Source: Macrostomum lignano (Eukaryota). Taken from it: a stretch of DNA of 63,637 nucleotides. This document shows positions 4,690 to 34,710 of this stretch, one piece after another (position 1 is the first letter of the stretch; each line of letters opens with the position of its first letter). Both the position numbers and the translations under genes were made by a program. The stretch covers positions 1 through 63,637 of the forward strand of contig NIVC01004034.1 in NCBI GenBank assembly GCA_002269645.1, in the 5' to 3' direction. Under the pieces are notes generated by a model. The model made no database searches. It worked only from the letters and a program-made list of their open reading frames with translations, and had not been told where the DNA came from.

Positions 4690-5290
4690 GCACCAGGTCA
4701 GTCAACGGTTTACAGATGGTACTCAAAGTTCTGTGGATGAAGCATTTCCCCTGGTCTCAGCTCCTCGGACTGGCCGGCCACGGTCAACAAGGACCCAAAG
4801 GAACTGATCTAGACCTGCCGTGCTCTTGTTGAAGAGGATCCAAAAGTTAGTGAGTGTCAAAGACCTCGCCGACTTTGTGAAAGTTGGAAAAACAGCAGTG
4901 CACGAAATTTCGACTGAGGATTTGCACCTTCGAAGAGTTTCTGCTGGCTGGGTTCCGCATGCTCTCCCCGAGGAGAACATATTCGCAGTCTTTTTTACAA
5001 CGATGGCATGAAAATAACTTTTCAACAAGTTGAAGGTGGAAGATGAGACGGGGTGTACATGAACAACACAGGTACAAAGTAAAGCAACAGGTGCAGGCTT
5101 GGCCAAGGTGAGATCAGCGACCACCAATGAAGTTCGAGAAGCTGCGTTGCAGTTTGCCAGAGGCCTTGATGATGATTGCTTGAAAAGAGAGGTTCAGCGA
5201 CTTGTTGAGCATTGCAAAGCTGTAATCAATGCAAGGGGAGATCACATTACCAACTAGTAAGACTGCTTTTTCAATACTTCGTACAATTTC
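4690..5290 (+). mobile_element. Internally deleted mariner transposase relic
   Basis: VYRWYSKF and TGRPRS (HTH1), VKDLA...VHEISTEDLHLRRVSAGWVPHAL (HTH2 plus WVPHEL motif), and C-terminal NEVREAALQFARGLDDDCLKREVQRLVEHCKAVINARGDHIT*. The DDD core is missing. Confidence 0.8.
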
Positions 5291-6940
5291 ACGACTTTCC
5301 GTACAGCCGAAGTATTCTTTGTTTCGAGTGCATGACGGGAGATAGAGTCAGGTGGAGGTCTCTGCCCTCGAGGCTCCGGTTGGCCAGACCGCGAGTCCTG
5401 GTGAAGACGTCGGGTTGCGGTACGGAGCGCCTTGTGTCGGCCATCGGCAGCCCCAGCACTTTGTCGTCCTCGGTGGGTTGCCACCTTAGTGGCCGCACAT
5501 TCAGGAGAAGGCGGCTCCGTTGGCACCTGCCCTGCGCTCAGGGATGGAGGTTGGGCAAATATTTTCCTGCTCAGCAGAGGTGAAAAATTATAGCCAAAGA
5601 AATGCTACTCTTTCAAAAGTAGTGTGCTGCGCAAATTTGATTGAATGGATCATAATGGGCCTTACGAGCCAAAGGGTTTGGTATCGAGTGCAGCCACGAA
5701 AGCGTAAATAAGGAGAAACTTGTAGGAAATAAGCGTCAGAAAAGCGAGTCAGAATGACTGTATCGTATACAGAGTTTTAGAGTAGAGTTGCCATGACAAC
5801 AAGAACAAAAAGATGGTTGCAGATCCCGAGACCCAACTGAGTAGCGACTGCTTCACTAGTTGATGAGGCTGAAACGCGTGAGAAAGAGAAAAAGCGGTTT
5901 GCGAGTTGCGCAGCTGTTTAGATTTTTGGCAAATGCTGCTTGCTGCTTCTCGTTAATTATTCAAAGGACGAAGCCGACAACTTCGGAAGCTCTTGAGAAG
6001 CTCTTGCTTTAGCGTTTGAGAAGCTTTGGACCAGAAATTTTGTGACAGATGGGAAAAAATGGAGAACAAGTGAAAGGCCGGCATCGCCTCGGCGAACGCT
6101 GCTGCTTTGTCAGCGACAAAATCAACTCCTGAGAGATGGAGACAGCTATCAGTAGCAATTGAAATTATAGCTGTTTGTTATACTTTAATATACGAAAAAC
6201 CGGACGCAAAAAGCTCACCTCGATTTCAATTTCGAGGTGTTTCGCTGGACATCCAAAACCTCTTTTTTCATTAGCAAATAAATTAGCCAGAAACCAGATG
6301 CCGGTAGAGATTAAATACTGGAGAGCCCGACTACAGGCAAGCGTTCCCAGTTCCCAGAATTTGCAAAGTTAGTGAAGTGAGAATGCATCGAGCCAGAGCA
6401 TGCGACAAATGGTTGGCAACCATTTGTAAGCAACTACGGGACAGTTTCAGCTTCAGTAGAGATGCATAGTCCCAGAGATGTGCTCATGCCGAGTCTTTTA
6501 GGTAGAAAGTTTCCTCATTTCTCTCAGCTGGGAAGTCATCAAGTGGTGAGCGGTGAGGCTACCGCCAGCATCAAAGCGCTGAAAAGTTACGAAATTAAAT
6601 AATTCAAAGGAGAGCCCGACTGCAGGCAAGCGTTCCCGGTGAAAAAAAGAATTTGAAAAAGTTAGTGAATTGAGGATGCATTGAGTCAGAGCAGCCAGGA
6701 AAATCTACCGGTGCTTGTTGCTAGGCTTCTAGTTGCTACATTTCTGCAATCTATTTTTATTGAGAAATCTTTGCAAACATATCTGCAAAACAGAAAACAA
6801 GGGAATAGAACTGATAACCTTTTTAAAAAGAAGTTTTACATGCTTTGACTCTTTCTGATAAGTTTTTGTTAAAAATTAAAATTCCTGGCTTTATGAGAGT
6901 TAAAAAGTTGCTGGTGAAAAAAAATCCAATTTTCTTCAGC

Positions 6941-7577
6941 TCAGTTGAAGGGCGACAGGCACTCGCAGAGACCGTAGCTGGTCGAAGACAAGTCAGTGAG
7001 GCCGCTCTTTCCGGAAAAGGCAGCGAGCTTGTCCTGCCCAGCCCCGTTATTGTCTGGCTCGCCATCGGCCCACAGGCTGGGCTCCACAGGGATGTTGCAG
7101 CCGACCCAGTACCAGCCGCCTGCCGGCTCCGCGCTGCCGGCCGGCTGGAAGCCTCCCAGCCACAGGGAGTTGCCGTGACGAAGCGACTCCACGTGGCTCA
7201 TCTCCGAGCTGCTCGTCACATCGGCCATGATCACCAGACCGCTCTCCGACTCGCATGTCGATTTTATGACGTTCCACGAGCCTCCATGCTGCTTGTACTT
7301 GACTCCGCAGAAGTCGTCTCCGTATCCGGGCGGACACAGCTGTCCCGCTGGCAGTCCCGGCTGCTGCCTCACGAACACCTGGCCTCGTCTGGAGCAGCCG
7401 CAGTCCCTCACAGACTTGCTGCACTTGTTGAACTCGAACAGCTTGGACGAAGTCGCTGTTGATGCACAGGGAGCCGTTGATGGGAGTGAACTTCAGGGAG
7501 CAGGACTGGCTGCCCAGAGCAGTGCTCAGCAGTGAGACAAAGACAAAGACAGTCCTGAGGCACTCAAGCTGATGCAT
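6941..7577 (-). CDS. Secreted C-type lectin, single exon, with one +1 frameshift at ~7445
   Basis: Signal peptide (TVFVFVSLLSTALG) in ORF 7047-7577; CTL motifs LWLGG, WYWVG, WADGEPDN and YGLCEC in ORF 6941-7411. GC3 bias switches frame at gac ttc gtc(c) aag ctg. Confidence 0.8.
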
Positions 7578-9580
7578 GGCTGCAGCAGGAGCTGCTTCTG
7601 CTGCGGCTTGATTGAGCTGATGGCTTTTATATGCATTCAGCTTTCTGTGAGTGATGCCATTGGCTTGCGGGGCCAGAGTTATTTTAGAAGAGGCAGAACT
7701 ATTTTACAGATATAGCTCACAGTTTCTAGAACAATACAGCCCATGAAATGGCTGTAAAATTTCAGGTTGCATTTTGGGCTTTATCAACCTGTTCCAATAT
7801 TTTTATCAGATTTCAAGTTAAGATTTAAGGATGTTTCGGCTTCAACCGTTAAAACCTTTAGAAATTTGAATGAGAAGAACTACCGGTAAAGGAGTGACTG
7901 AGACTCACTGAGACCAAGAGCTGCCATGCCAACTCTTAGGTCAACTCAGGTAAAAAATACGCTCGTAGCGAGTAGATTGGAAGATTTGCAGTCGCGCATC
8001 TCTTGCTGAGCTTTTTAGTACCGGCAATTCTGATCCAGAGAATATTTTTTCAGGGGAAAAGAGTTGCGAACAATGAGCTTGAACAGAAAGCACTGCCTTA
8101 CTTTGCTATCATGAAAAACCCCAGAGACCAACTGCAGATTGCTGCACTGGGTAGGCAGTGCTTTGCAGAGAAGCCCGGCTTTCTGCTCTCAGTGCTCAAG
8201 CATGTGACTGCGCAGGGCAGGGGAGCCTGGCTTCTTCTGGAGTTTCACCCACCAACTCCCGATGAGCTGCGAGAGCGAGCCAGAATTCTGCCCAACCCAT
8301 CTTGCTTTTGCTTAAGAAAGAGAAGCTTGTTTTTGATCAACAATTGTTTTCATCGCTATGGAAGAGGTCCTTGATTGACATGAAAGCCTTTTTGCGGTTC
8401 TAGCGTCAACTAAATATGCCGTGAGCTTCAAGCGGCTGTGGGTGAAAATTGCTCGAAAAAGAAGTGCGTTATTTTCTTGCCTCTTGCGTAACAATCTGGT
8501 AGCTTTCGCTCGATGAGAAAAAGCTGTTCTTGCAAAGTCAAAAAAGACAATTTTCCAAATTATTCACCTGAGAAGCAAGGGAGAATTGCTGAAGGCTGGC
8601 TTCATCAAAATAATCGCGATTCTGCTTATGCTGATAAAGAAGAAGAAACAAGTTGAATTTTTTTAGAAATGGCTCTTGATTTCTAAGCCGGAGAATGAGA
8701 TGCCGGTGCAGAACTTCAAGCCGAATGAGACTTGAGGCAGGCTCAGAAGAAATATGATAATATCTTGTATATCAAAGTACAATGCAAAATCTGCTGGCTA
8801 AGCACAGATATGCACAATGCTGGGCCTCCTATGTTCTCCTCGGCGTCGTTCCCATTCTCTGCTAGAAGGTGCGGCAGGCTATCAACCTCATTGAGCGTCT
8901 CCATGCTCAAACACTACTCATACACGTTCTTCTCCGCTCTGCTTCTTGCTACTCAGCGTTGAGTCCTGTTGAGACATTTCTTTGAAAGCTTTCCGTATTA
9001 AATTTCACTGTGGAAACAGCTTCACAGTTTGCACAGTTCAATGTGGAATTGTAGAGTGTTTTGAACGTTCGTCTTCGCTGCCATTTCTGCAGGAATGCCG
9101 AGCGTCACGCGAGTGGCGTATCAATATTGGCTTTTTCCCGTGCAGCTTAATTCGCTGCCTGAGAAAAGCTATTTTCCAGGGATATACAGTGAGCAGAGCC
9201 AACTGTCTCTTGCGGGGGCGTTCTCTTAACTGAATACATTTGAGCCTACGTCTTCAGCGCATGTCATATTAAGAGTGAGTCACTAATGAGTTCATGAGTG
9301 ACTCATAAGTGACTCATGAGTGAGTTTTTACAGGTCTGTACTGACCGGATCAATAACATGATCGGCCAGCATTGGTCGGCCATTGGTTGGTCGGTCGGTC
9401 GTTGGTAGGCCGTGGTCGGCCACCATACAGGGCTGTTGAGTCCCAGAGATCTCAAAAGTAAGGTTAGAAATCAAATGTTTTATTTTGATGGCAGGTGGCC
9501 AAAAAGATTATTGTGACTACGGTTGAAAAGTTTGGTGCCGGGAGCTTCAGTGCTCTATAACAATTAGAATGTTGCACGAG

Positions 9581-9760
9581 CTACTCACAGATAACTTCAG
9601 TCACAGAAGACACAACAAGGGCCATGGATAGACGCATCAAAAGCATTTGGGCCATCGCTTTCGCGTCCCATGCATATAACTGCACAACGATTGAAAATCT
9701 GTCGAACCACCTGGAGAAGTTGCTTCCAACCTCCAAGCGCTCGATTTCCATAGCACCTGC
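9581..9760 (-). mobile_element. Gag-like N-terminal fragment of an LTR element
   Basis: IERLEVGSNFSRWFDRFSIVVQLYAWDAKAMAQMLLMRL resembles Ty3/Gypsy gag N-termini. Confidence 0.4.
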
Positions 9761-10089
9761 CATTGGGCGCATTGGTCCATTTGCACTCTTCGTCGGTTGA
9801 CTTGTGGCTTGATACAAGTCTGTATAGACCGGATTAACAACACAGGGCTTGATGCCCTGAATCTGCGTACTTTTACGCGTGGTAGCACCTTCAGCTTTAT
9901 TTATGCCAAGGTCCGCTTTTCAATTGAGTCGTATTTATTTACTCATTTCACTCCGACGAGCTCTTAGTTAGGCTCTTGTGCTCTGGGTACGATACGCGCT
10001 CGTACAGGCAAATAAAATACGAGCTAGTCTACGACTTTAATTCAGTTAAAATTAACTTTATCTGTTCGGACAAAAGCCAGTCCGCAGCA

Positions 10090-10365
10090 GAGTTCATGAG
10101 TGCCTATGTCGTTAGGCGATCATCAGCGGTTCTGGAGCGAAGTAGTCTTTTCAGATCCTTGTATTCAGCTTCACTATGCTTTGCAGGAGCCAGTGTGTTT
10201 CTTACTTCAAATAGAAGACGGTATGCTGCTGATCCAATAGAGCTCAACAAATTCAGGCGATTCGGGCTGTCATTGATCCCGAATCTCTTGATACACGGCT
10301 CCCAATCTTCCCGGTGAACCGTGTTGAATGCTTTGGTGATTTTCGTCATCCTTGTTACCAATATT
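10090..10365 (-). mobile_element. Gypsy (K02A2.6/Mag-like) element B: PBS-like start plus gag N-terminus
   Basis: attggtaacaaggATG resembles the tggcgacgaggATG start; peptide EDWEPCIKRF...LLSSIGSAAYRLL...LAPAKHSEAEYKDL, with frameshifted APEPLMIA. Confidence 0.7.
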
Positions 10366-10395
10366 GAGTCTCAATAATCTCAACGAATAGCCTGG

Positions 10396-11424
10396 TCAGT
10401 TGTAGCAAGTAGCCATGAATTCGAGCGTATGTTTTAGCCGCATAATATTAACAATCGAGCGCCTGAGAGCACCGTTTGCCTTTCGAACGAGCACGATTGG
10501 AAGGGCCCATTGAGAGAAACTGACCTGGTTGACGATATCACTGTTGTTGAGACCGTCGATCCCCTTCTTGAGCTTTGCTTTCGATGCAAAGCTCAAGGAG
10601 CTCAAGGACGCGCCTTAATGTACTTCGACACAGCTCCTTCTACCAGCTGAAGCTTAGCTTTTTAACTGATCCATCTGTACCCGAGTGTGCCCGATTGTAA
10701 CATTTTGCAGGGCAATGTTGATAACGGTCGCGTCCCAGAAGAGCAAAGTTCCGGTAGGATTTAGCGACCTGATACCTGACACTCACGGATTTACCATTCC
10801 AAACTGTCTGGAGTGTGAATTGTCTCAGCAGGTCAAAGCGGTGACTACTACGCTCGTATCAGAGTATCCAATCAGAACTGCATCGCTAGGCTCTAGAACT
10901 GGTCTGCCAATGTCCGCCCAGAGACGAAAGCACCAGCATCGAGCTGACAGTTGATGAGCCTAAGTTGACCTTTGATCGCACACTTCAGCAATACTGCAAG
11001 ATGTGCTCCTTTCACAACTGGCGCATCAGAGACAGAAAGTACTTCCTTCAAATCCTGCATTTTAAAGTGATGCAGATTACCACACTTTCTGCATTATTTT
11101 TCATTGGCCGGACTTTGGGGTCTTGGGTGCTGCTCGCCTCCACAACGGTTACAGCGACTCTTTGTCTCTGCCTCTGACCAACCGGAGAGTTTCCTCGTAG
11201 GCTTCCCCGATGAAAATGACTTCCGTCCAACTTTCGTAACAGTTTCTTGTTTCTGGCTGGTGCCGACTGCATGATTTGCGTGCCTTTCAGCGAAGCAAAA
11301 GGCTTCGGCCACGGCCTGCTTGAAACTGAGTTCCTCGTGGTCCTTGATCAGAAGCTTCGCTACCAGAGATTTGTCATTAAGACTGCAAATGAACTGGTCT
11401 CGCAATCTTTCGTAAACTGACACT
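10396..11424 (-). mobile_element. Gypsy element B: gag C-terminus, Zn knuckle, protease and RT start (degenerate)
   Basis: ERLRDQFICSLNDKSLVAKLL; CNRCGGEQH; CQLDAGA and LLGRD (protease); FSQWALPIVLVRKANGALR (RT N-terminus). Confidence 0.75.
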
Positions 11425-11590
11425 TGTTTGCATATAAAATAGTTAGGCTCTGATTTTGAGCCGAGTGTGTGCCAGAGTATATTATATAAATGAAAACTGA
11501 GCCTGGTCGACTTAACTGCCGCGCTGCAGGCTTTAACATAGACAACAATACTCGTATAAAGTTCAACGTAAGCGCTTGTCACTACCAACA
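11425..11590 (-). mobile_element. 3' LTR (166 bp) of Gypsy element A
   Basis: On the - strand it begins TGTTGG right after the polypurine tract gaagaggggagg (11591-11602) and ends CAAACA, giving TGTT...AACA termini. Confidence 0.75.
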
Positions 11591-14500
11591 CCTCCCCTCT
11601 TCAGTTCATGCCTGTGGCTTAAGCAGGGTTTCCCAATTCATTATACGTGAGCCTCTGGGGTGGAACACCGCGAGTAGGTCTGGTACTCCTGGTCGGACCA
11701 ATCGGCTCATCCGCGGGCAATAGAATTGTATCTTGATGAGTTTTTGGCAGATCTGGTCTTGAGAAATCCGTTGTTGTCAACGGGCACAGCTCCTTAAGAA
11801 ACCGTCGGTTTCGGCGCAGAATTCTGCCGTTTGATAGTTTAATCCTATGGTCGCGAAATTTTTCTACCTCCACTACCCTTCCCTGGAGGTCCCACTTCTT
11901 GGTAACCGGTTTTTGGACAGTGACTGTTGATCCGCGTCCGATACCAGGCAGAGGTCTTGTGCTGCGGTTGTAGCTCCACATCACCTCATTCTGTTTATCG
12001 GCGGCTTTGGCCTCCATCTCAGTCGCAGCTTTGTGCCATTCCGGTGCGAAGCTTTTTCTATGAGCTGGTAGAGAATCTCTAGCAGGATGTTCAAACAGGA
12101 TGATAGATGAAACTCTACCGTCGTACTAGTCGTACCGTCGTACGCTTGCTAGTTGGTCTTTGTCAATGTCGCTCAGTTTTTCGTTCCACGATCCCCTGAT
12201 TATTTTCTTTGCGGTCTTGACGGCCGCCTCTGCTTTGCCGTTGCTTTGATGATAGTACGGCGACGAGTAGCAAACTTCCACACCCCATCTGGTCATGAAT
12301 TTTGTAAATGCGGTGGCTGTAAACTGAGGACCGGAATCGCACCAAAATTTCTGTGGGATCACCGTCTGACAAAACAGTTCTCTGAAGGCGTTGATGAGCT
12401 TATGGGTTGGTGCATGCTGGCCGAAATTCCATACGTTTAACCAGCCTGATAGTCCATCTACTATCACCAGAAACTTTCTAGTGTCGTACTCTCAGAAGTC
12501 TGCGTGAACTTCCTCAAAGCATCTAGCTGGCCGGGGTCGCTCGACCATCGGCTCCCGGGCCTGCGACGGTAAGGATTCTCGGCAGGATTTGCAATTGTTT
12601 ACTGCGTCGTCGATCTCTTTTTCCATGTTTGGCCAGAAGAGGAATTGCTTTGCTCTCAGTTTTGTCTTGTAGATCCCTGGTGGCTTGAATGAAGCATCGC
12701 ACCATTTCTCGGCGCAAGGCTTTTGGGATCACGCACCGACATCCGTATAATATGAGTCCATTTTCGGTTGTTAACTTTTCTCGGGCCTGCCAATATTGCC
12801 TTAGGTGCTCTGGAAGGTTGGATTTACAGTTGGGAAATCCATCAGCGATTAACTTGATCAAATCTTGCAGATCAGAATCGGTCGATGTTGCTTCTCTGAC
12901 TTTATGCAGGCTTGGATCGAAGTCAGCTTCCTGAATCTGTGCTGTTAAAATGTTCATCGTTTCAAATTCGTCTCGCTCTCCAATTTGATCTTGCACAGTC
13001 GCATCTGCAATCGGTGCTCTGGAGAGAGCGTCTGCATCAGCATTATCCTTTCCACTGACTCACTTGGCTTCGTAGTTGTAGCTATCCAATTTACCCCGTA
13101 GTCTTTGTAGTCGCGGATTTTCAATCTGATCAAGCTGATAAGTGTTGAGGATTGGTACTAAAGGCTGTGGTCAATGATGACAGTGAATTTCGACAGACCT
13201 TCCAGAAACAATCTGCACTTTGCTGCAGCCCAAGCGACAGCGAGTAGTTCTAACACAATCATCGCGTATCTGGTCTCAGCGTCTGAGAGGTAGCGAGAGC
13301 CAGCTTGGACAGTTCTCCACGATCCATCCGACTGTTGTTGTTTCAGGATGAACCTTAGGCCCTTTAACCTTGACACATCGGTGTGTAGTTCAGTTGGTTT
13401 CGACTAGTCGTAATACGCCAGCGATGGTGCTTGAGATCGATACCGTCGAGCTTCTTCGAAGGCTTGTTGATGACACAGTTGCCAGATGAACATATTTTTA
13501 CAGCTCAGAAAAGGTCTCAGTATAGCTTTAAAAGTAGTGAGTGGCATGCTTTCGTCGGCCAGGGGAATCTGATGATATCCCTTAAGAGCATCCACCACTG
13601 TGAACCAATTAGAGTTAGCCATGTCTGTGTTCGCGACAACTTCAAGGGGCGTTGGAGACTGATACCGTGCCCGAATGACGAATTTATTGAGCTGACGAAA
13701 GTCAATGCAGAGTTTGATCTTGTCTTGTGCCCTTCTTCGGGGCAACTAAAATAGGCGCGCACCATAGGGTTGGCTCCGAGACAGGGCAGATGACTTTCTG
13801 CTCTTCGAGAGCGTCTAGCTCGCTCTTAAGTTTTGCTGCAGAGGCATCGCTAAACGTCGCGGAGTCCAAACCGCGAAGGGCTGAGCGTCGTCCACCAACT
13901 GAGTTTTGAATTTCTCTCCTCTCATAGGGCGTATCTGCCCGTCGAAAACTGTAGGAAACTCTCTGATGAGCTGCTCCTCAGTGGTTGGTGGTTCGCTAAT
14001 GCCGCACGTCAACGGTGCAGGCTGTGGGAAATTCATCGGAATGATCCCCAGTTGCTGGCAGGTATGCCATGACAAGACTGGATTGACTAGCTTTTTCAGT
14101 ACATGCACCTCTGATAGAACAGTGCATGCATAGCCCGCAGCAGATGTGTCTTGAACTTCCCCACCACGGGAAGGTTTTGGCCGTTCGCGGCTGGAATGAT
14201 AGTTGAGTGTTTGAGCTCATGAGCGCCAATCTTGAGCCTTCGAAAGTCGATTTCGCTGATGGCGTCGATATTCGAGCCTGTATCCGGCATCATAGAGAAT
14301 GAGGTGCCCCTGATGTCTACGTCCAGCGTTGGAGTGCTTTGTGCGATGATGGTGGAAACTCTCTTGTTCATGCGCTTTTTTTCTGCACACAGAGTCAAAT
14401 GGCCACTCTTTCCACAACTGAAGCATGTTTTGTCTCTCGCTGGGCATGATGATCTTGGGTGCATTGACTTGCCACAGAATCCGCATGTTCCGGAAGCGTT

Positions 14501-15500
14501 GATCTTTGGTCTCGCAGCGCTCTGTCGGGATGAACTTCGTTGGTGCTTCTCTTGTCTGGGTTTTTTGAAATTGACTTTTGCTAATGACTTTGTTGTAGCG
14601 TCCTTTGTTGTGTTAATGTCAGATGCACAGATTTCGTCCCTTTGCTTTGTCGATGCCTCTTCTGCTCTGCAAATTTCGAGGGCTCCAGCTAGTGTTAGCT
14701 TCGGCTCCGATAGTAGCTTTTTAATTGCTTCTGGGCTGCTCACTCCCAGCACTATCTTGTCCCGCAGCAGGTCGTTCGAATGTTTGCAGAATGCACACGT
14801 CCTCATTAAGTCTCTGAGTTTCAATACATACTCATTGAAGGGTTCTCCGTCTTTCTGGTGTCACTTCCAGAACCTGTTGCGCTCCACAATGATGTTTGCT
14901 TGTCCCAATAGGTGCTGTCTAAGCGCGGAGATGACCTTTTCGGGGTCTTTGAAGTCTGCCTCCGACAATGGTAAGTTCTTGTACTTACTGAATCTTGCAG
15001 ACGAAAAAGCGTTCAGCATGCATGTGCGTCGGCTAGCTCTTTTCTGTGCCGTCACGTCTGCTGAATCAGTTGCCAGATGCTGGACGCCCATAGCCTCCAA
15101 ATAAGCTTCTAGGGTAGCTTGCCCTGCATCAAAATCGTCTAAATTGTCGGTTACAAGATCCAATCGAGGGATTTGCAATCCAGGGTGTCCGAACTTGAAC
15201 TTTTCTGGTTCACTGCTTCCGCTTGGTGGAGGGGTGGAGAGTTTCTCTTGATGCTGTCCAACTCACTCCCGACTCCCAGAGTTCATTCCTAGAGTCACAG
15301 CTCGGTCACTACTAACTTTTGCGCTCCTAAAACCTTCCAGAGCATGCTAAGCATTTGACTCTTGCTTCATAGCACGTACTTAGGCTAAAGTGTTACAGTT
15401 TGGAAACTCGAGACTCTTAATCATAGCTTAATAGCAGAGGCTCTTTCCGCCGTCTCCGTCTCCGTCCCTGTTTCTCTTGACGCTTGAGTTTATCTTACAA
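11591..15500 (-). mobile_element. Gypsy (Mag-like) element A internal region, inactive; no recognisable 5' LTR
   Basis: Gag (LRDKIVLG), two CCHC knuckles, protease DTGS, RT CIDFRQLN and VDALKGYHQIP (YxDD region deleted), RNase H (ETRYA..LELLAVAWA), integrase (DGLSGW, CDSGPQF, SNGKAEAAVK). Many frameshifts and stops. Confidence 0.9.
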
Positions 15501-15599
15501 AAGAGCTGCATCAATTGTGCATTAAAGACACGGTTTGCCGTACACCGCCCCAACACAGATTCTCAGCTTGTCTTGCTTCTCGCCACAAAAATGCATCCA

Positions 15600-15850
15600 A
15601 AACTCTCGAGCGGCGGGCACAGAGGACCATTCGGAACCGCTCCGCACTTAAACGGCTTCATTGTGCTCGGGGAGAGTCAGAACTCCTGCTCAGAGCAAGT
15701 TGGCTCATTTGCATCTTGCTCTGGCTAAATTAGGTAGAGAAATTATTTGCGGTAATTAGATTTATCACAATGCACTCGGTGACAATGTACGCTGTAAAAT
15801 AGGGAACTTGTCCAGTTTTTGTCCAGCGCACACAGCACTCTGTGACTTGA
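15600..15850 (+). promoter_or_regulatory. Upstream block shared by the tandem helical-protein genes (copy 1)
   Basis: Homologous to 19450-19680 and partly to 17740-17770. Contains caatgtacgcTGTAAAATagggaact; the 17751 copy reads TATAAAAA. Confidence 0.55.
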
Positions 15851-16017
15851 TGTAACAGCTGCAGTGTATATCATTGTGGCATCATTTGTACCGATGTGCG
15901 CAACCGACCCATCAGCCAATTCAGCGTAAAGCTGCTCAACGCAAAGCACAGAAAGTCTTTCGACATCTCTAGCCGGAGTTACTGCTGACTGGGTAGGCAG
16001 TGAAATCCTTTTTAGTC

Positions 16018-16926
16018 ATGGCAGATGACCCACTGGACAGACTGGCAAAGGACATTCAGAGAACTGCAGACATTGTCAAGAATGTAAAGTCGCTTCGACC
16101 CAAAATTAACGAGCTGTCCGAAATCATTGAAGCCTCTGGTCGCCATGCAGCTGAGTTGGTAACAATAGACCTGCCCGGTGAGCCACTTCTGGATGATTTG
16201 AAAGAAGAGCTGAGAAAGCTGCAGGAGTTCGGATCGATTCTTAAAAGACAACTCGATACCTTCGGTCAGAAGCTCACTGTTTTGGAGGATTTCGTGCACT
16301 CAAAGTTCTCAGGAAGGAGAGAAATTCCTTTAAATAATATTCAAGAGCTCTGCCAGAAACTGATAGCAACTTACAACACTTCTAATGTTTCATTAACGAA
16401 CTTGACCAACTTCATCGGCTGCTTCAGCGATTCACAGCTGCTCGCACAGAAGCTGGAGGAGAAGCTGAAGCAGCAGTCTAAGGATATGGACAAGAAAGCC
16501 AGCCGCTCCAGGAACTGGGGAGCCGCTGGCACCATCGGCCTGGCTGCTCTCGGAGCTGGCGCTGTGGCTCTCGGCTTCTTCACCGGCGGAGCCACCTGGG
16601 TTGCCGCTGGCGCCATCACTGGTACCGCCTGTGGCGCTGGAGCTGGGGCGGTGGCCAAATATACGTCGCGCAGCGTGAAAGAGATGCGAAGCATGGCAGC
16701 TGACATCAAAGAGAAGTCCAACAAGTTGCACGTGATCGCTAAGGAGCTGGAAGATGATGTCGGCAAGGCAATCCGCATGAATGGGGAAGCCACTCTGGAC
16801 CTGCAATGTGTGCTTGAGTTCTTTAGTAAGGACGAACTCATTGCCCAGCAACAAAAGGAGCTTGCCGCCAAGGATGAAATGATTGCGCGGCTGAATGAGC
16901 AGTTAAAGCAGCACGGCAAAATTTGA
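16018..16926 (+). CDS. Helical coiled-coil protein with Gly/Ala-rich hydrophobic hairpin (APOL-like / alpha-pore-former-like), paralogue P1
   Basis: Intronless ORF with ATG at 16018 just after ttttag; heptad-rich flanks; ~45-aa uncharged segment GAAGTIGLAALGAGAVALGFFTGGATWVAAGAITGTACGAGAGAVA; no signal peptide. Confidence 0.8.
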   Translation: MADDPLDRLAKDIQRTADIVKNVKSLRPKINELSEIIEASGRHAAELVTIDLPGEPLLDDLKEELRKLQEFGSILKRQLDTFGQKLTVLEDFVHSKFSGRREIPLNNIQELCQKLIATYNTSNVSLTNLTNFIGCFSDSQLLAQKLEEKLKQQSKDMDKKASRSRNWGAAGTIGLAALGAGAVALGFFTGGATWVAAGAITGTACGAGAGAVAKYTSRSVKEMRSMAADIKEKSNKLHVIAKELEDDVGKAIRMNGEATLDLQCVLEFFSKDELIAQQQKELAAKDEMIARLNEQLKQHGKI

Positions 16927-18029
16927 TTTGTTACTGAAGTGCAGGAGTGCACAACTGAAAGTTCTCTCGGACACGCCTCACGCAACTCATAACAGGTTTT
17001 TCTCCACTCCCGAACTTAATAGAAACCGTGTACGTGTAGTTACGGCAGTTGATAAACTTCTTTTAAAAGTTTTACTCTTTTCGATCTTACTCTTTCAGTG
17101 TTAGACACACATTCTGTCTATATTGTCTATATACTTAAAGTAGAAAGTAATAACTTGTCACAAAATCTTTCTTCAGCTCTAATCGTCATTCCACAATGTC
17201 CCATCAAAATCGTTAAATATCGAAGGCAAATTTCTTCTCCTAGACTGCATCGCGAGCAGTGAAGACTTGACATGAAGGTTTTTTACCGAAAGGCTGTGGG
17301 GGTGCAGACTTATCTGTCCTATTTGTTTGCTTTCACGTTTTTACAATTAAACAGTTTTAAACAGCAAATTACTCTTTGTTTTATCTTTTGTGAAATATTT
17401 GTCGTACAGAATTTTTTTAAGAATTACGAGAGAGACAGGCAGTTCCACACAGTTCTTAAGCACTCAGTGCTGCTTTGTCTGCGTGAAAAAGGCATGCACT
17501 GCTTTTGGATGGTTTAACTTCGCATGTAAGTAGCTTATGACTCAAATATTGACGCCTATTATGACGCATTTCTGTACAAAATCCTTGAATCGCGCAGCCG
17601 ACCCGCTCTTAACCGAACTCTTCATTGAACTGAGGGTGCGTCAGAACCTTTTGAGAAAAGTTATTTTTCATTTTATTCTATTCATAGCAATTATTCATTC
17701 GCAGGCACTGGGTGCGGTTAATGAAACCCTAAGGAAACGCCAATGTACGCTATAAAAAGGGAACTGTTGGTTACTTGGGGCAGTCGGCTCGGATTTAACA
17801 GAAAAGCAACACTGCCTTTCACTCGTGCGCTCTCGGACTTTAAAGTGTACTGGGTGTACTCTGAAACACAAGTTACTCAAAATAGAAAGGGAACTTCCGT
17901 TTCTTTCAATCTACACGGCTTATGCACTATTTAAGACCCCCAAAAGACTTCTCTGCATATTTTTAAGGCAAGAATAAATAGTGAAACTTTGCTGTTTAAC
18001 CTCTAATCGGATCGGAGAGGCTGGTCGTG

Positions 18030-18776
18030 ATGGACGAGGTGCTGATAAACATTGGTCAAGCAGCCAAGACCATGAAGCTGCTTCAAAGGAACAGTTCCGA
18101 GCTGTGCAACATTATTGAAAGCACGAAGGACAATGCCAGCAAAGTTGAAGCAATCAACCTGCCACAGGAGTCGCTGCTGGAGAGGCTGAAGCAGGAATTG
18201 CATAGGGTTCGGGAGTCCGGGGCAAAGCTTGAGGTCGGGCTCAAGGCATTTCTTGAGAAAATCAAGGATTTCGAGGACTTGCTTCGTGCAGCAAGAAACA
18301 TTCCTGTTAGAGAGTTTAGCGAAAAACTGGACAAGACCCACAACATGACTGAAAGCATCTACGACGCTTTCGACAGCTTCGTGGGCCACCTCAGTACGTC
18401 GCAGCAGCTCGCGGTGCAGCTGGAGGAGAAGCTGAAGCAGCAGTCTGAGGAGAAGGACAGGGCAGCCAGCCGCTCCAGGAACTGGGGAGCCGCTGGCACC
18501 GTCGGCCTGGCTGTTCTTGAAGACTTCTTTACCGGCGGAGCCACCTGGGTTGCTGCTGGCGCTTTCGCTGGTTCCGCATATGGTTCCGAACTGGAGCAGT
18601 GCATGGCCACCCACACGGTGCTCAGCGTGAAAAAGACGCAAAGCATGGCCGCTGACATCGAAGAGAAGTCTAGCAAGTTGCACGTGATTGCTAAGGAGCT
18701 GGAATCATGTGTTTACAAGGCGCGTGAATGTGAAAGGGAAGTGTGCTTGAGTTCCTTAGTAAGGACTGAGAACTAA
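18030..18776 (+). CDS. Paralogue P2 with a disrupted hydrophobic hairpin and frameshifted C-terminus (functional variant or pseudogene)
   Basis: Colinear with P1/P3; ancestral ATG position reads gga and a new ATG lies at 18030; hairpin reads LAVLEDFFTGG...GSELEQCMA; C-terminal DNA matches P1 in a different frame. Confidence 0.6.
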   Translation: MDEVLINIGQAAKTMKLLQRNSSELCNIIESTKDNASKVEAINLPQESLLERLKQELHRVRESGAKLEVGLKAFLEKIKDFEDLLRAARNIPVREFSEKLDKTHNMTESIYDAFDSFVGHLSTSQQLAVQLEEKLKQQSEEKDRAASRSRNWGAAGTVGLAVLEDFFTGGATWVAAGAFAGSAYGSELEQCMATHTVLSVKKTQSMAADIEEKSSKLHVIAKELESCVYKARECEREVCLSSLVRTEN

Positions 18777-19449
18777 GGAGTTCCTTAGTTCCTTAGGGAG
18801 CACTGGTCAGCAACAAGAGATAGCACAACAAAATGAATGAATTGTGTGGCGGAGAAGTTAAAGCATTAAGAAAAAAAATTAAAAATCTTTTAAATTTTAA
18901 ATTTTTTTTCGAGCTATTTCAGTGTTAGACACGCATGCTATCTATATTGCTTGCAGTACAAAATTATCACTTTTGTTACACAACTTTTGCCTCCGATATG
19001 TAATAAGCATCATTTTGTAATGTCCCCACAAAACCCTTAATAATCGAAGGCAAATTTCTGCTCCTAGATTGCATCGCGAGCATTGCAGACATAAAATGAA
19101 GTTTTTCATCAAAACTTATAAGTAGTGTTAGTTTCTCGCTGAGCTGCGAATTTCCTGGAGTCGCATTCAGGGATAGACATTGATAGTTTCTAATGTACCG
19201 CCAGCGTATGCCCAGTTTAATAATTTCGCATAGGAGTTAGAGAGGCCGAGGACAACTGGATTTTCCTGGCTTGGATTTGCATTTTCCAGGACTTTTTATT
19301 TTCTTAATGCATAAAAAATTTTTTATATTTTATTTTAGATGCATTTTCCTGGCTGGAGTTTGTGTATCTTTGTAGCTCTTGTGAAAAAAAAGCTTCATCA
19401 ACTGTGCTTTAAAAACACAGTTTGCCATGCGCCAATTCTACTCAGATTC

Positions 19450-19680
19450 AGAACTCTCGAACGGCGGGCACAGTGAGCCATTTCGAGCCGCTCCGAACAT
19501 ACGAGCTAAAACGGCGCGCTTCATTGCATTGAGAGAGAGTCAGAACTCAGAGTCAGAGCAAGTTGGCTCATTTGAATGCGCCATTATTAAGTTCATGGAA
19601 ATGCTCTCCGTAACAATGTACGCCATAAGAAAGGGAACTTCAGTTTTTGTCCAGCGTACACAGCACTCTGTGACCCTGTG
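19450..19680 (+). promoter_or_regulatory. Upstream block shared by the tandem genes (copy before P3)
   Basis: Aligns with 15600-15850 (actctcgaacggcgggcacag, gagtcagaactc, gagcaagttggctcatttg, gggaacttcagtttttgtccagcg). Confidence 0.55.
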
Positions 19681-19993
19681 TGGCAGCTGCAAGGCAAAGT
19701 GAGCCCTGCCGAAAAAGCAGTTGTTACAGACCCTAAACAAAGGCTCTGAGTTGAGTCAAAACAAGTTTTGCTATGCAGTCATTGGTTGGCTGGTGCAGGC
19801 ATTGTGCAGAGTGCGACAGTCGCTTTTTTATTTGCGCGACATCGCCGTCCCCAAGTGTACTCGTAGTTCAGCAGTATTTAAGACTCTGAGATACATATAC
19901 ATGATTTTAAAAGAAAGAAATTAATGTTATAAGAAGGCTAAACAAGTAAAATCAAAAGTGAAAGTGAAAGTTTCCTGTTTAACTAATTGAATC

Positions 19994-20920
19994 ATGTCAG
20001 AGAACCTGAGCGATATCGGCAAGGTGCTGGCTGGCCTTGGTGACGCAGTCAAGACCATGAAGCTGCTTCAAAAAAAAAATTCCGAGCTGGAAATTATTGC
20101 TGAAAGCACGAGGGACAATGCCAGACAAGTTGAAAAAATCAACCTTCCACATGAGCCGCTGATGGAGAAGCTGAAGCAGGAGTTGCAGATGGTTCTTGAC
20201 TCAGGGGAAAAGCTTGAGGTTTGGCTTAAGAAATTCCCTGAGAAAATCAAGGATTTTGAGGACTGTCTTCGTTCGAAAATCTTGGGTCGGTTCAACATTC
20301 CACCTGCGAATATTAAAGAGTTTAGCGACGAACTGGACAAGGCCCATAGAATGGCCAAAGACTTCTTCGGTGCTTTCGACAGCTTCGTGGGCCACCTCAG
20401 TAAGTCGCAGCAGCTCGCGGTGCGGCTGGCGGAGAAGCTGAAGCAGCAGTCTGAGGAGACGGACAGGGCAGCCAGCCGCTCCAGGAACTGGGGAGCCGCT
20501 GGAACAGTCGGCCTGGCGGCTCTTGGAGCTGGCGCTTTGGCTTTCGGCTTCTTCACCGGGGGAGCCACCTGGGCTGCTGCTGGCGCCATCACTGCTGGTG
20601 CCGTCTGTAGCGCTGGAGCTGGGGCGTTGGCCGCCCATACGGTGCTCAATGTGAAAGAGATGCGACAGCTGGCCGCTGACATCAAGATAAACTCAAGCAA
20701 GCTGCACACCATCGCCTCTGATCTGAAGAGCAGCGTCGACATAGCCGGAGCCATCCAGCTGAACGGGGAGACCGAGGAGGCCCTGAAAACGGCGCTGGAG
20801 TTCTTTAAGCGGGACATGGAGAAGGATGGCCGGATCGCTGAGCTGCAGATGGAGAGCAGTGCCAAGGATGCCCGGATCGCTGAGCTGGAGGAGAAGGTGA
20901 GGCGGCAAGGCCTGCACTAG
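19994..20920 (+). CDS. Helical coiled-coil protein with hydrophobic hairpin, paralogue P3
   Basis: 308-aa intact ORF sharing SRSRNWGAAGT and FFTGGATW with P1 and P2. Confidence 0.8.
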   Translation: MSENLSDIGKVLAGLGDAVKTMKLLQKKNSELEIIAESTRDNARQVEKINLPHEPLMEKLKQELQMVLDSGEKLEVWLKKFPEKIKDFEDCLRSKILGRFNIPPANIKEFSDELDKAHRMAKDFFGAFDSFVGHLSKSQQLAVRLAEKLKQQSEETDRAASRSRNWGAAGTVGLAALGAGALAFGFFTGGATWAAAGAITAGAVCSAGAGALAAHTVLNVKEMRQLAADIKINSSKLHTIASDLKSSVDIAGAIQLNGETEEALKTALEFFKRDMEKDGRIAELQMESSAKDARIAELEEKVRRQGLH

Positions 20921-26200: not shown

Positions 26201-28472
26201 AGCCCAGTGGTCAGAGCGTCGGACTCACGACTCGAAGGTAGGGGGTTCGATTCTCGACCCACTCGAAACAGTTTGTGTCCTTGAGCAAAGTGCTTAACAC
26301 TGCATTGCTTCAGTTCAACCAGCTGTAAAATGGGTGCCAGCATTAGCTGCGGTAATTGAGGGTGTTCGACTCCCCAGTCATTGGACTGAACAGCCGTACG
26401 CAGTCTTCAGATGCGCCGCGCAACAGCTGCGGCTGAGCTGTCGGTTGCACATCTGCCCATTAGGGCAGGTGCAATCAATTAATATTATTAAAGTTGTGCA
26501 TTGTTGGCAAGGAGGCAAAGCGTCTGGATTGGGTGGCGCTCAAACTGATGGCATGGCACTCAAACTGATGGCATGGCACTCAAACTGATGGCATGGCACT
26601 CAAACTGATGGCATGGCACTCAAACTGATGGCATGGAACTCAAACTGATGGCATGACACTCAAACTGATGGCATGGCACTCAAACTGATGGCATGGCACT
26701 CAAACTGATGGCATGGCACTCAAACTGATGGCATGGCACTCAAACTGATGGCATGGCACTCAAACTGATGGCATGGCACTCAAACTGATGGCATGGCACT
26801 ACAGGGACCCCAAGGCTGGAGCCCCCCAGACGTACCTCAGGCAGCAGGACCAGCAAGGCGGTGGCAGTCAGCGAGCTCACGGCCAGGGCCGTCATGAAGG
26901 CCATCAGCAGGTTGAACAGCCGGCGGCCGATGCACGGCAGGAAGCTGATGCCCACCAGGGCGCACAGGTTGATGAGGGTGACGAACAGCAGGCCGAAGCC
27001 CCACACTGCGGGCAGGGGGGGGGGTCGCCAATCCTGCTGAACAAGCCCGGTTGAGCAGCTCAACTGGAGACTCAAATATTCACGTCTCTCACCTTGAGCT
27101 GGACTTGGAGCACCGTGACTGTGACCGTCTCCGTGACCGCCTCCGTGACCGCCTCCGAACCCGTTGCCCAATTCAAAGCCAGGAAGCGGCGCACCCGCGC
27201 TGAGTCCTGAAGTCGGCAGGCGCCCGTCGTAGCAGGCCGGGGTTTGAATTCCCGCCAGCAGGGTGGCGACCAGGTGGCTGGCATTGTGCGGAGTCCAGGC
27301 CAGGGGCATCAGGCTGGATGGCTGGCTGGGGCACTGCGAGGGGTTGCGGGTTGGGCTGCGTCTGAGACTGAATTCTGTGTCTGAGCTGCATGGCAACCAC
27401 TCTATGGGGATGAATTCAGTGTCTGAGCTGCATGGCAACCACTCTATGAGACTGAACTCAGTGTCTGAGCTGCATAGCAACCACTCTATGAGACTGAACT
27501 CAGTGTCTGAGCTGCATGGCAACCACTCTATGAGGCTGAATTCAGTGTCTGAGCTGCATGGCAACCACTCTATGAGGCTGAATCCAGTGTCTGAGCTGCA
27601 TGGCAACCACTCTATGAGGATGAATTCTGTGTCTGAGCTGCATGGCAACCACTCTATGAGGCTGAATCCAGTGTCTGAGCTGCATGGCAACCACTCTATG
27701 AGGATGAATTCTGTGTCTGAGCTGCATGGCAACCACTCTATGGGGATGAATTCAGTGTCTGAGCTGCATGGCAACCACTCTTTGGGGATGAATTCAGTGT
27801 CTGAGCTGCATGGCAACCACTCTATGGGGATGAATTTAGTGTCTGAGCTGCATGGCAACCACTCTATGGGGATGATTTGGGTAGCTGAGCAGCATAGCAA
27901 CCACTCTATGGGACTGAATTCAGTGTCTGAGCTGCATAGCAACCACTCTATGGGACTGAATTCAGTGTCTGAGCTGCATGGCAACCACTATGGGGATGAA
28001 TTCAGTGTCTGAGCTGCATAGCAACCACTCTATGGGGATGAATTGGGTAGCTGAGCTGCATAGCAACCACTCTATGGGGATGAATTGGGTAGCTGAGCTG
28101 CATAGCAACCACTCTACAAACAACAACAAATTATGCGACCCCGTAAGCAAAGTCAGTTAAAGCAGGGCGCGTCAGATGGCGCGCCGCAGAGCCTGGGAGC
28201 GAACGAAGTCTGCTCCGTTGGCAGTGTCGGGCGCCCCAGCGTCGCACAGCAGGCAGTCCACGTACGTGGACAACCACTCTATGGTTATGATTTGCTCACC
28301 TCCAGCTGGGCGCCGGCCGCGGCCGCCTTGCTCAGCAGGCCGGGGCTCATGCTGATGCCGGCCAAGAAGTCGGTGACATTGCGGCCGTAGGCGATGCCGG
28401 AGCGACCGTAGAGGCGGATGAAGTCTGCGGCCAGCGCAGAGATCCGAGCTGCCTCTCCCGAGTTCGACATGC
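23266..28472 (-). CDS. LIV-1 family ZIP metal transporter, ZIP8/ZIP14-like (SLC39); 5' exon(s) not fixed
   Basis: Phase-consistent exons 28472-28300, 27333-27093, 27005-26836, 25101-24856, 24650-24012 and 23418-23266. Motifs [11 protein letters not shown] and [11 protein letters not shown] (E-variant of HExPHExGD, as in ZIP8/14), His-rich loops, and terminal QNLGLLVGF. Confidence 0.9.
23525..23990. repeat. 19-bp minisatellite (catcggacaccccggaccc)
   Basis: Direct tandem periodicity in a ZIP intron. Confidence 0.95.
25134..25662. repeat. 30-bp minisatellite (tctaggctgaccacagactgcactgatcaa)
   Basis: Tandem periodicity with a few longer variant units. Confidence 0.95.
26193..26490 (+). mobile_element. 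tRNA-derived CORE-type SINE, copy 2
   Basis: tagcccagtggtcagagcg and ggttcgattctc boxes; tgtgtccttgagcaaagtgcttaac...cagctgtaaaatggg; homologous to 2076-2390. Confidence 0.85.
26541..26800. repeat. 20-bp minisatellite (caaactgatggcatggcact)
   Basis: About 13 near-identical tandem units. Confidence 0.95.
27365..28115. repeat. 39-bp minisatellite (tgaattcagtgtctgagctgcatggcaaccactctatggg-type)
   Basis: 13-codon periodicity in the spurious ORFs on both strands. Confidence 0.95.
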
Positions 28473-28559
28473 CTGCGGGTTGACAGGGGCGGCGAGTTGG
28501 CAATCGTTTTGAATCGTTGGTGGTAATGTTCTATGGGCTCGACACCTCACAAACTCGAA

Positions 28560-29330
28560 ATTCACTAGCTCAACCTTCACTAGGTCAACCTTCACTAGCT
28601 CAACCTTCACAAGCTCAACCTTCACAAGCTCAACCTTCACTAGCTCAACCTTCACTAGCTCAACCTTCACTAGCTCAACCTTCACTAGCTCAACCTTCAC
28701 TAGCTCAACCTTCACAAGCTCAACCTTCACAAGCTCAACCTTCACAAGCTCAACCTTCACTAGCTCAACCTTCACAAGCTGAACCTTCACAAGCTCAACC
28801 TTCACTAGCTCAACCTTCACAAGCTGAACCTTCACAAGCTCAACCTTCACTAGCTCAACCTTCACTAGCTCAACCTTCACTAGCTCAACCTTCACTAGCT
28901 CAACCTTCACTAGCTCAACCTTCACTAGCTCAACCTTCACTAGCTCAACCTTCACTAGCTCAACCTTCACTAGCTCAACCTTCACTAGCTCAACCTTCAC
29001 TAGCTCAACCTTCACTAGCTCAACCTTCACTAGCTCAACCTTCACTAGCTCAACCTTCACTAGCTCAACCTTCACTAGCTCAACCTTCACAAGCTCGAAC
29101 TTCACAAGCTCAAAATTCACAAGCTTGAGCTTCAAAAGATCACCCTTTACAAGCTCCACCTTTACAAGCTCAACCTTCACAAGCTCAACCTTCACTAGCT
29201 CAACCTCCACAAGCTCGAACTTCACAAGCTCAAAATTCACAAGCTTGAGCTTCAAAAGATCACCCTTTACAAGCTCCACCTTCACAAGCTCCACCTTTAC
29301 AAGCTCGAAATTCACAAGCTCAAACTGTGA
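28560..29330. repeat. 15-bp minisatellite (ttcactagctcaacc)
   Basis: 5-codon periodicity (AQPSL / VKVEL); the degenerate 3' end is duplicated as a higher-order block. Confidence 0.95.
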
Positions 29331-29914
29331 GCTACAAAAAATGAAACATGCATTGAACTCACTGTGCAATCCAAAACTCCCGCGGGCACTTGAGCTCAGG
29401 CAATCTCACAGGTCTGACCGCAGTCTGCTTTAAACCGTGCGCCTCTCTGCAATGCACCTGAGCTGCAATTATAGGCAGCTCCAGAGGCGAAGTCCAACCT
29501 GGTGCGAGATTTTCCCCAGCAACGCCTGAGCCAAACTTATCTCTAAGATAGCGCAGCGGTAACCGAGCATGCACTGAGCAGCTCGGTATGGCACACAATG
29601 AGCACTTGGAGACCTGCTGCTGCTGCTGCCGCAGGCGCCACTCTCCAAGCACGGCCACCCTCGGATCAAAGGTCCATCGCGCCATTCCCCAAAGCAATCA
29701 TTTGCAATCATTTAGTGCTGCTAGGTTGCCATGCCGACCGAAAAATACTTGCAGTAAGCATTCTGGATGAAGTCTTTGACCGCTAACCCGAAGCTGTGCA
29801 GTGCCAGCCAGAATTGGCAACAGTTTTTCAGAAGGCCGTTGATAACTAAGCAACGTTATGAAACATGGAGCACTGTGATTCTACGAGCGTATTAACTACT
29901 AAATTTGTCTGTGT

Positions 29915-32894: not shown

Positions 32895-34710
32895 GGAGGG
32901 ATTCAGACGGGGGGAGACTCAGACGGGAGGGGGGAGACTCAGACTGCAGGGGGGAGAGATTCTGACGGGAAGGGGAGACTCGGATAGGGGGAGACTCAGA
33001 TGGGAGGGGGAGATTCAGACGTAGGGGGATGAGACTCGGATGGGAGGGGGGAGACTCAGATGGGAGGGGGAGACTCAGACTGGAGGGGGGAGAGATTCAG
33101 ACGGGAAGGGGAGACTCAGATAGGGGGAGACTCAGACGGGAGGGGGAGACTCAGATGGGAGGCGGAGACTCAGACGGGAGGGGGGAGACTCAGATGGGAG
33201 GGGGGAGACTCAGATGGGAGGCGGAGACTCAGATGGGAGGGGGGAGACTCAGACTGGAGGGGGAGACTCAGATGGGAGGGGGAGACTCAGATGGGAGGGG
33301 GAGACTCAGACTGGAGGGGGGGGAGATTCAGACGTAGGGGGATGAGACTCGGATGGGAGGGGGGAGACTCAGATGGGAGGCGGAGACTCAGACGTAGGGG
33401 GATGAGACTCGGATGGGAGGGGGGAGACTCAGATGGGAGGGGGAGACTCAGATGGGAGGGGGAGACTCAGATGGGAGGGGGAGACTCAGACTGCAGGGGG
33501 GAGAGATTCAGACGGGAAGGGGAGACTCGGATAGGGGGAGACTCAGACTGGAGGGGGGGGGAGATTCAGACGGGAAGGGGAGACTCGGATAGGGGGAGAC
33601 TCAGACGGGAGGGGGAGACTCAGATGGGAGGGGGGAGACTCAGATGGGAGGCGGAGACTCACACGGGAGGGGGGAGACTCAGATGGGAGGGGGGAGACTC
33701 AGATGGGAGGCGGAGACTCAGATGGGAGGGGGAGACTCAGACTGGAGGGGGAGACTCAGATGGGAGGGGGAGACTCAGATGGGAGGGGGAGACTCAGACT
33801 GGAGGGGGGGGGAGATTCAGACGGGAAGGGGAGACTCGGATAGGGGGAGACTCAGACGGGAGGGGGAGACTCAGATGGGAGGGGGGAGACTCAGATGGGA
33901 GGCGGAGACTCAGATGGGAGGGGGGAGACTCAGACTGGAGGGGGAGACTCAGATGGGAGGGGGAGACTCAGATGGGAGGGGGAGACTCAGATGGGAGGGG
34001 GGAGACTCAGATGGGAGGCGGAGACTCAGATGGGAGGGGGGAGACTCAGATGGGAGGGGGAGACTCAGACTGGAGGGGGAAACTCAGACTGGAGGGGCAG
34101 ACTCAGATGGGAGGGGGGAGACTCAAACTGGAGGGGGAAACTCAGACTGGAGGGGGAGACTCAGACGGGAGGGGGAGACTCAGATGGGAGGCGGAGACTC
34201 AGATGGGAGGGGGGACACTCAGACTGGAGGGGGAGACTCAGATGGGAGGGGGAGACTCAGACTGGAGGGGGAGACTCAGACTGGAGGGGGAGACTCAGAC
34301 GGGAGGGGGAGACTCAGATGGGAGGGGGGAGACTCAGACTGGAGGGGGAGACTCAGATGGGAGGGGGGAGACTCAGACGGGAGGGGGAGACTCAGATGGG
34401 AGGGGGGAGACTCAGACGGGAGGGGGAGACTCAGATGAGGGGAGACTCAGATGGGAGGGGGAGACTCAGATGAGGGGAGACTCAGATGGGAGGGGGAGAC
34501 TCAGATGGGAGGGGGGAGACTCAGACTGGAGGGGGAGACTCAGATGGGAGGGGGGAGACTCAGACGGGAGGGGGAGACTCAGATGAGGGGAGACTCAGAT
34601 GGGAGGGGGAGACTCAGATGGGAGGGGGGAGACTCAGACTGGAGGGGGAGACTCAGATGGGAGGGAAGAGACTCAAATGAGGGGAGACTCAGATGGGAGG
34701 GGGAGACTCA
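32895..34710. repeat. G-rich ~19-21-bp minisatellite (ggggagactcagatgggagg), ~1.8 kb
   Basis: Tandem G-run units; source of spurious GGGDSD/RLRWEG ORFs. Confidence 0.95.

Follow-up and report, generated by a model that had tools for sequence, protein, structure and literature searches.

What kind of protein is made by a closely spaced set of intronless genes that no domain library recognises? This question is raised by contig NIVC01004034.1 of the flatworm Macrostomum lignano (assembly GCA_002269645.1), of which positions 1 to 63,637 of the forward strand were analysed (63,637 nucleotides, nt, here called the window). The window carries three paralogous genes in tandem, copies 1, 2 and 3, and the proteins of the two intact ones are predicted to hold a long uncharged hairpin, rich in Gly and Ala, between long helices. 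The reading favoured here is that they belong to a divergent family with a hairpin like that of apolipoprotein L (ApoL) and an overall build like that of the bacterial toxin ClyA, and that they would be ApoL-like membrane-inserting proteins; confidence in this reading and doubt about it are about evenly matched.

Three tandem gene copies

Exactly three paralogues are present in the window, all on the + strand, as seen in the list of open reading frames (ORFs) and by tblastn of the window. Their starts lie about 2.0 kb apart and the repeat unit takes in upstream sequence. A tandem trio at this spacing had been described in the earlier note, made from the letters of the sequence; the trio is there, but only two of its three genes are intact. 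The copies and the segments that code for the hairpins are as follows.

16018..16926, + strand: copy 1, intact single-exon gene, 302 amino acids (aa) from the ATG (ORF and translation, alignment)
16513..16656, + strand: hairpin-coding segment of copy 1, residues 166-213, uncharged, FFTGGA turn, Kyte-Doolittle maximum 1.78
18030..18870, + strand: copy 2, decayed gene, with an open frame of 248 aa at 18030-18776
19994..20920, + strand: copy 3, intact single-exon gene, 308 aa, the protein used for modelling
20486..20653, + strand: hairpin-coding segment of copy 3, residues 165-220, uncharged, FFTGGA turn

Copy 3 is 56% identical to copy 2 (E 2e-78) and 42% identical to copy 1 (E 6e-59). The reading frames of the copies run without interruption and the annotated M. 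lignano counterparts are single-exon genes (846 nt and 281 aa; 954 nt and 317 aa), so the genes are intronless, as had been proposed. The M. lignano genome has a mean of 4.9 introns per gene (PMC5730564), and the single-exon structure is unusual for a gene family of this species. An exact look-up of the copy 1 and copy 3 proteins in public gene calls found neither recorded. Antisense ORFs that lie over each gene (for example 16371-16985 and 20068-20865) were rejected as by-products of the Gly/Ala codon bias.

Protein architecture and predicted structure

The copy 1 protein has three long helices, then the Gly/Ala hairpin and then two C-terminal helices. The uncharged stretch, which is 48 residues long in copy 1 and 56 in copy 3, consists of Gly, Ala, Ser and Thr to 66-71% and has FFTGGA at its centre, and 33-35% of the residues in its flanks are charged. 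Both proteins lack a signal peptide, because their N-termini are not hydrophobic. With the hydrophobicity and insertion scales used for the helices and the hairpin, which are approximate, amphipathicity is significant in predicted helices 55-95 (z 3.5) and 104-165 (z 5.0) and weaker in the remaining helices, while the best 19-mer of the hairpin has a positive summed insertion energy, that is, its hydrophobicity is marginal. The description first given, of amphipathic helices around an uncharged Gly/Ala hairpin with an FFTGGA turn and no signal peptide, applies to copies 1 and 3, with the limits that two helices carry the significant amphipathicity and that the hairpin of copy 2 is partly lost.

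The copy 3 protein was modelled with AlphaFold2 from an alignment of 5 sequences (predicted local distance difference test, pLDDT, 65.7) and from one of 13 sequences (pLDDT 76.9, predicted template modelling score, pTM, 0.64). Both models have five long helices, three before the hairpin and two after it, which in the 13-sequence model span residues 2-47, 55-95, 104-173, 209-253 and 259-305, and hairpin residues 169-212 are of low confidence. According to these models the proteins are all-helical, about 300 aa long, with a coiled-coil-like C-terminal tail.

A family expanded in Macrostomum

Run exhaustively against 1.84 billion representative proteins, the family profile gave 15 hits, 8 of them strong. 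Seven of the eight strong hits (those looked up by name), together with the proteins P0001 and P0002, are unnamed M. lignano proteins, and one hit is a Rotaria sordida ApoL protein. Four weaker full-length relatives, P0009-P0012, align with the Macrostomum set at an hhalign probability of 99.7% (E 9.5e-26, 294 columns). A word-indexed protein search returned only 2-3 members of the family, because Gly/Ala words saturate its candidate list, and in Pfam, NCBIfam and PDB sequences neither the single proteins nor the family profile had a match above the curated thresholds. Judged by these searches, this is an unannotated family, expanded in Macrostomum and absent from domain libraries. It is transcribed, since the gene models of its relatives stem from transcriptome-based annotation (PMC5730564). 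Horizontal transfer from bacteria was rejected, as no full-length bacterial homologue was found among the representatives searched.

The tandem arrangement is seen again at three other loci, L001 (M. lignano contig NIVC01000020.1), L012 and L002, and the gene of P0002 has a paralogue 2.5 kb upstream. P0009 lies within a cluster of intronless paralogues at L002, by its sequence an apparent second and independent tandem array of the family. There, at 4914-13951 of ENA entry ERZ25072196 (guanine-cytosine content, GC, 0.40), P0009 has as neighbours three ORFs similar to it in size, which lie on both strands; a comparable hydrophobic hairpin is found in at least two of them.

The hairpin module and apolipoprotein L

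Compared by hhalign, the 13-member family alignment matches a set of 15 ApoL proteins with a probability of 96.1% (E 3.6e-9, score 73.8, 120 columns). The match covers the end of a long helix, the hairpin and the following helix, and reversed or locally block-shuffled controls score at most 40.3. The Macrostomum-only subset gives a probability of 94.3% over 144 columns (E 1.1e-7). An ApoL hidden Markov model (HMM) gives 24.7 bits to copy 3 and 23.5 bits to copy 1, and no more than 3.1 bits to reversed decoys; with the family HMM, 20 ApoL proteins rank above the first reversed decoy, and the reciprocal HMM scores are 21-38 bits against at most 17 and at most 3 bits for the decoys. The Rotaria sordida protein that served as ApoL control (P0013) reaches 40.7 bits with the Pfam ApoL model, whose cutoff is 25.9. 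Its turn, APFTGGAS, is an example of the nearly invariant turn of the ApoL set, with which the window turn GFFTGGAT aligns. These profile comparisons make it plausible that the hairpin and its adjacent helices are a remote relative of the ApoL transmembrane hairpin module. The ApoL architecture claimed in the earlier note is upheld for this module, but membership of the ApoL family is not established, because no window protein passes the Pfam ApoL model.

APOL proteins begin with a bundle of helices; a flexible transmembrane hairpin with many helix-breaking residues follows, then another helix hairpin and, at the C-terminus, a leucine zipper. Among them APOL1 alone has a signal peptide (PMC10937811). 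The window proteins have the same order of parts: the N-terminus is helical, the two-helix Gly/Ala hairpin turns at xFTGGx, and further helices lead to a C-terminal coiled coil. Like all APOLs except APOL1 they are without a signal peptide. The differences lie in the position of the hairpin, which in the rotifer ApoL proteins used is near the N-terminus (about residues 45-85 of 282) and here follows about 165 residues of helix; in the turn, where the proline and serine of ApoL are replaced by F and T/A; and in the flanking domains, which are not recognisably ApoL. Where ApoL has an N-terminal bundle of four helices, and a membrane-addressing helix hairpin and leucine zipper behind the transmembrane hairpin, the model has three long helices ahead of its hairpin and two behind it, and the profile match reaches no further than the first helix after the hairpin. 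A search of one library of papers found nothing on ApoL in flatworms and nothing that links ClyA with APOL1. With the rotifer-type ApoL profile, a PDB search at E ≤1 turned up no solved chain of an APOL. The best PDB match of the ApoL-protein profile was to residues 147-227 of SmhB, a component of a ClyA-type tripartite toxin, at a non-significant E of 0.25.

Several results weigh against an ApoL-like membrane-inserting family. The Pfam ApoL model (PF05461) is matched by none of the three window proteins at E ≤1 and by none of the 13 family members at E ≤10. The similarity to ApoL is limited to about 120-144 columns centred on the compositionally biased hairpin, where both models have their lowest confidence (pLDDT 28-39), and constraint on the genes is weak, with pairwise ratios of nonsynonymous to synonymous divergence (dN/dS) of 0.5-0.9. 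A look-up by M. lignano gene identifier in the papers and supplements searched found no expression, localisation or membrane data. The sequence GGFFTGGATW is also present in large bacterial proteins that are unrelated to the family and in a tape-measure-like protein of a phage, so that convergence of the hairpin motif is possible; the motif may be a widespread solution for a hairpin turn.

In these proteins, from loci L003-L006, L011 and L007, GGFFTGGATW lies inside hydrophobic hairpins of bacterial proteins and of the tape-measure-like protein. The bacterial ones have, in their own sequences, a metallopeptidase-like N-terminal motif and a nuclease-like C-terminal end. Such metagenome scan matches (bacterial polymorphic-toxin-like proteins and the tape-measure-like protein) were rejected as homologues, since they are at motif level only.

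Possible mode of action

As an ApoL-like protein, each product would be synthesised in the cytosol and be soluble there, its helices bundled so as to shield the marginally hydrophobic hairpin. At a target membrane the hairpin would insert and associate through its small-residue faces, and the inserted hairpins could then permeabilise or remodel the membrane, as has been proposed for intracellular APOLs. Copies 1 and 3 could carry out this insertion; copy 2 would be without the required hairpin length. Membrane insertion by the hairpin is plausible from its composition and length, and a toxin or immune role is no more than possible.

ClyA-type toxins and other alternatives

ClyA is a helical rod of about 300 residues with a hydrophobic hairpin between its third and fourth long helices; the window proteins resemble it in size and helix order, which serves as a lead only. 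The window genes might encode eukaryotic alpha-pore-forming toxins of the ClyA superfamily (ClyA/HlyE, XaxA/YaxA, Hbl/Nhe, AhlABC/SmhABC, MakABE), soluble rods whose head hairpin would insert and build oligomeric pores, possibly as a multi-component set formed by the paralogues; this appears unlikely. For both models, Foldseek ranks seven or eight ClyA chains above all other PDB structures, aligned at full length (300-324 columns) and with probabilities of 0.95-0.99, and AhlC, AhlB, Hbl-B and MakB stand further down the list, among many generic coiled-coil proteins. ClyA as first match has E 0.016-0.035 and a template modelling (TM) score of 0.34-0.38. The ClyA matches are weak, with E 0.016-0.09, TM scores of 0.28-0.40 and a root-mean-square deviation of about 15 Å, and no match reaches E 0.001. 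Among sequence models, NCBIfam alph_xenorhab_A (XaxA) has collinear sub-threshold matches in 4 of the 13 members (copy 1 at E 2.1e-5), and there are single sub-threshold matches to HblD, MakA, MakE and Pfam Bacillus_HBL; but XaxA scores at best 24 bits where the cutoff is 125, and these matches may be noise, because SMC coiled-coil models match at the same E level (4.8e-5). None of the ClyA-type sequence models (Pfam HlyE or Bacillus_HBL; NCBIfam XaxA, HblD, Mak) was passed, and the family profile found no ClyA-type chain among PDB sequences at E ≤10. Unlike ClyA, the window proteins are eukaryotic, with no bacterial homologue among the 1.84 billion representatives and so no sign of a donor, and their hairpin is longer and much richer in Gly/Ala. 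What stands of the ClyA/Hbl/Nhe likeness first put forward is the rank of ClyA as first PDB fold match of both models, but neither E nor TM is significant; on the models, the relationship to ClyA is no more than suggestive. It is also conceivable that ApoL and the bacterial ClyA-type alpha-pore-forming toxins form one superfamily, in which the window family would be a bridge, tied to ApoL by profile and to ClyA by fold, with the non-significant SmhB match of the ApoL profile pointing the same way; we regard this as distinctly improbable.

Two further explanations concern the hairpin itself. The proteins might be resident membrane proteins anchored by the hairpin, with cytosolic coiled-coil ends, that act in tethering, fusion or fission of organelles, comparable to syntaxin-17 and to the proposed non-lytic role of APOL3. 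A central hydrophobic two-helix hairpin between long coiled-coil flanks, in a protein that has no signal peptide, fits monotopic hairpin proteins, the APOL3 hairpin has been likened to that of STX17 (PMC10937811), and residues 18-128 have a profile match to the syntaxin-1A Habc domain (E 0.002). That match is, however, weak and falls within a generic three-helix region, the hairpin is only marginally hydrophobic by the approximate insertion energy of its best 19-mer, and a lineage-restricted, tandem and fast-evolving family with decay of copies would be unusual for core trafficking machinery, so such a role is rather doubtful. It is very unlikely that these are structural coiled-coil proteins peculiar to the lineage, whose Gly/Ala stretch would serve as a flexible linker of low complexity and have no function at membranes. 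Proteins of this kind would account for the very low confidence of the hairpin in the models, for the weak constraint and for the decay of the hairpin in copy 2 and in P0006, a relative at L001, and many fold matches are to long coiled-coil axonemal proteins, but these have TM scores of about 0.2 only. A mere linker would also leave unexplained that the turn motif and the uncharged length are kept in P0009-P0012 at 19-25% identity, and that the directional match to the ApoL hairpin exceeds the composition-preserving controls.

Besides ApoL, the helix-hairpin-helix core resembles SLATT and holin-like hairpins at sub-threshold level, with matches to SLATT_1 in 5 of the 13 members (best E 1.9e-5) and to Phage_holin_3_6 in 7 of the 13. 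The cutoffs of the SLATT two-transmembrane domain models were not reached (NCBIfam NF033634, 24.6 against 41 bits; Pfam PF18181, 19.1 against 26.3), and SLATT domains differ in being short bacterial conflict-system domains without long flanking helices.

If the ApoL-like reading is true, free-living flatworms carry an expanded and fast-turning-over family of ApoL-like membrane-inserting proteins that domain databases have missed, and the ApoL-type hairpin module extends to a much more divergent architecture. This would bear on the ancestral function of ApoL, lysis or membrane dynamics, and M. lignano, in which transgenesis is available, would be a tractable model for where and when such proteins are expressed. 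At present the genes represent an uncharacterised, lineage-restricted family for which a putative membrane role is plausible from sequence.

A gene-conversion-like tract and the evolution of the copies

The stretch SRSRNWGAAGT, which stands before the hairpin, is identical in all three copies of the alignment. It belongs to a longer tract of high similarity, and a second shared block lies upstream of the genes.

~20410..20650, + strand: homogenised, gene-conversion-like tract, shared with copy 1 (~16440-16680) and copy 2 (repeat families D1 and D4)
15595..15863, + strand: upstream block of copy 1, common to copy 3 (19446-19691) (repeat families D6-D9 and alignment)

The tract spans the end of the long helix and the hairpin. 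In sliding comparisons of copies 1 and 3, a block of about 250 nt has 88-92% nucleotide identity against about 50% elsewhere, and the longest identical run is 33 nt (permutation p < 0.0002). In the hairpin block the synonymous divergence (dS) between the two copies is 0.147, whereas the N-terminal and C-terminal parts have dS values of 1.2 and 1.09. Since synonymous sites are conserved too, the invariance of SRSRNWGAAGT is mainly due to homogenisation at the DNA level, and the nearest M. lignano relative, P0001, already differs within it. The earlier observation of an invariant hairpin approach between divergent flanks is correct for the three copies, but their invariance is mainly a product of this homogenisation. 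The turn motif and the uncharged length, which persist in the distant relatives named above, indicate that the hairpin is also under constraint at the protein level where the genes are alive.

An invariant hairpin with diverging flanks had also been taken as the mark of an immune or toxin effector. The conversion-like tract and the substitution rates do not bear this out: pairwise dN/dS stays at 0.5-0.9 both among the copies and when the window genes are compared with their M. lignano counterparts, and it rises above 1 only in comparisons that involve P0006, whose hairpin is degenerate. Positive selection on the flanks found no support in these pairwise values, in which no pair of intact genes exceeds 1.

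Relative to its paralogues, copy 2 has one in-frame loss in the first arm of the hairpin and charged substitutions in the second arm, which reduce the uncharged stretch to 21 residues. A premature stop and one or more frameshifts have cut off its C-terminus, of which remnants in a second frame reach about 18.87 kb; at the DNA level there are 5 gap openings, and the C-terminal remnants are spread over 2 frames. By its sequence, copy 2 is a decaying gene that is without the hairpin length that insertion would need.

The window is syntenic with the L001 contig. The two loci are 90-94% identical in their flanks, to which the region of a downstream ZIP-transporter gene belongs, but only 80-84% in the gene cluster, so that by sequence the window is a homeologous or otherwise diverged copy of L001. 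The latter holds two genes like copy 1 (P0006, which is annotated and has the degenerate hairpin, and an intact one that is unannotated), one fragment and one gene of the copy 2/3 type, P0001. The unannotated intact gene, a paralogue of 296 aa at L001 4988-5875 that is absent from the called genes, is the closest counterpart of copy 1 (72% identity). As read from the sequences, the family evolves by birth and death with conversion across the hairpin, that is, by duplication, loss and gene conversion.

Upstream block and genomic surroundings

The decamer CAATGTACGC is found 5' of all three genes, at 15783-15792, 17741-17750 and 19614-19623. The upstream block that bears it is, on sequence grounds, a candidate shared regulatory region or promoter element within the duplicated unit. 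The decamer is followed by an A-rich stretch and GGGAAC, and its distance from the three start codons is 230-380 nt.

Scans of the window for Rfam families and for tRNAs gave no match. A degenerate retroelement remnant of the long terminal repeat type lies at 11094-15178 on the - strand; its ORFs, read separately, match gag-aspartyl protease, reverse transcriptase and integrase core, and several frame breaks divide its pol. A part of about 3.9 kb (~10.7-14.65 kb) is without a counterpart at the matching place in L001. Dense minisatellite arrays, with periods of 15-56 nt and up to 94 copies, occupy 23550-44156 and 59357-63526, several of them inside the region that is syntenic with the ZIP-transporter gene of L001, and most long ORFs in them are repeat artefacts (for example 33060-34586, and 28347-29369 with a spurious pentapeptide match). 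An AT-rich block at 48001-56000 has a GC content of 0.29-0.34, against 0.45-0.60 elsewhere in the window.

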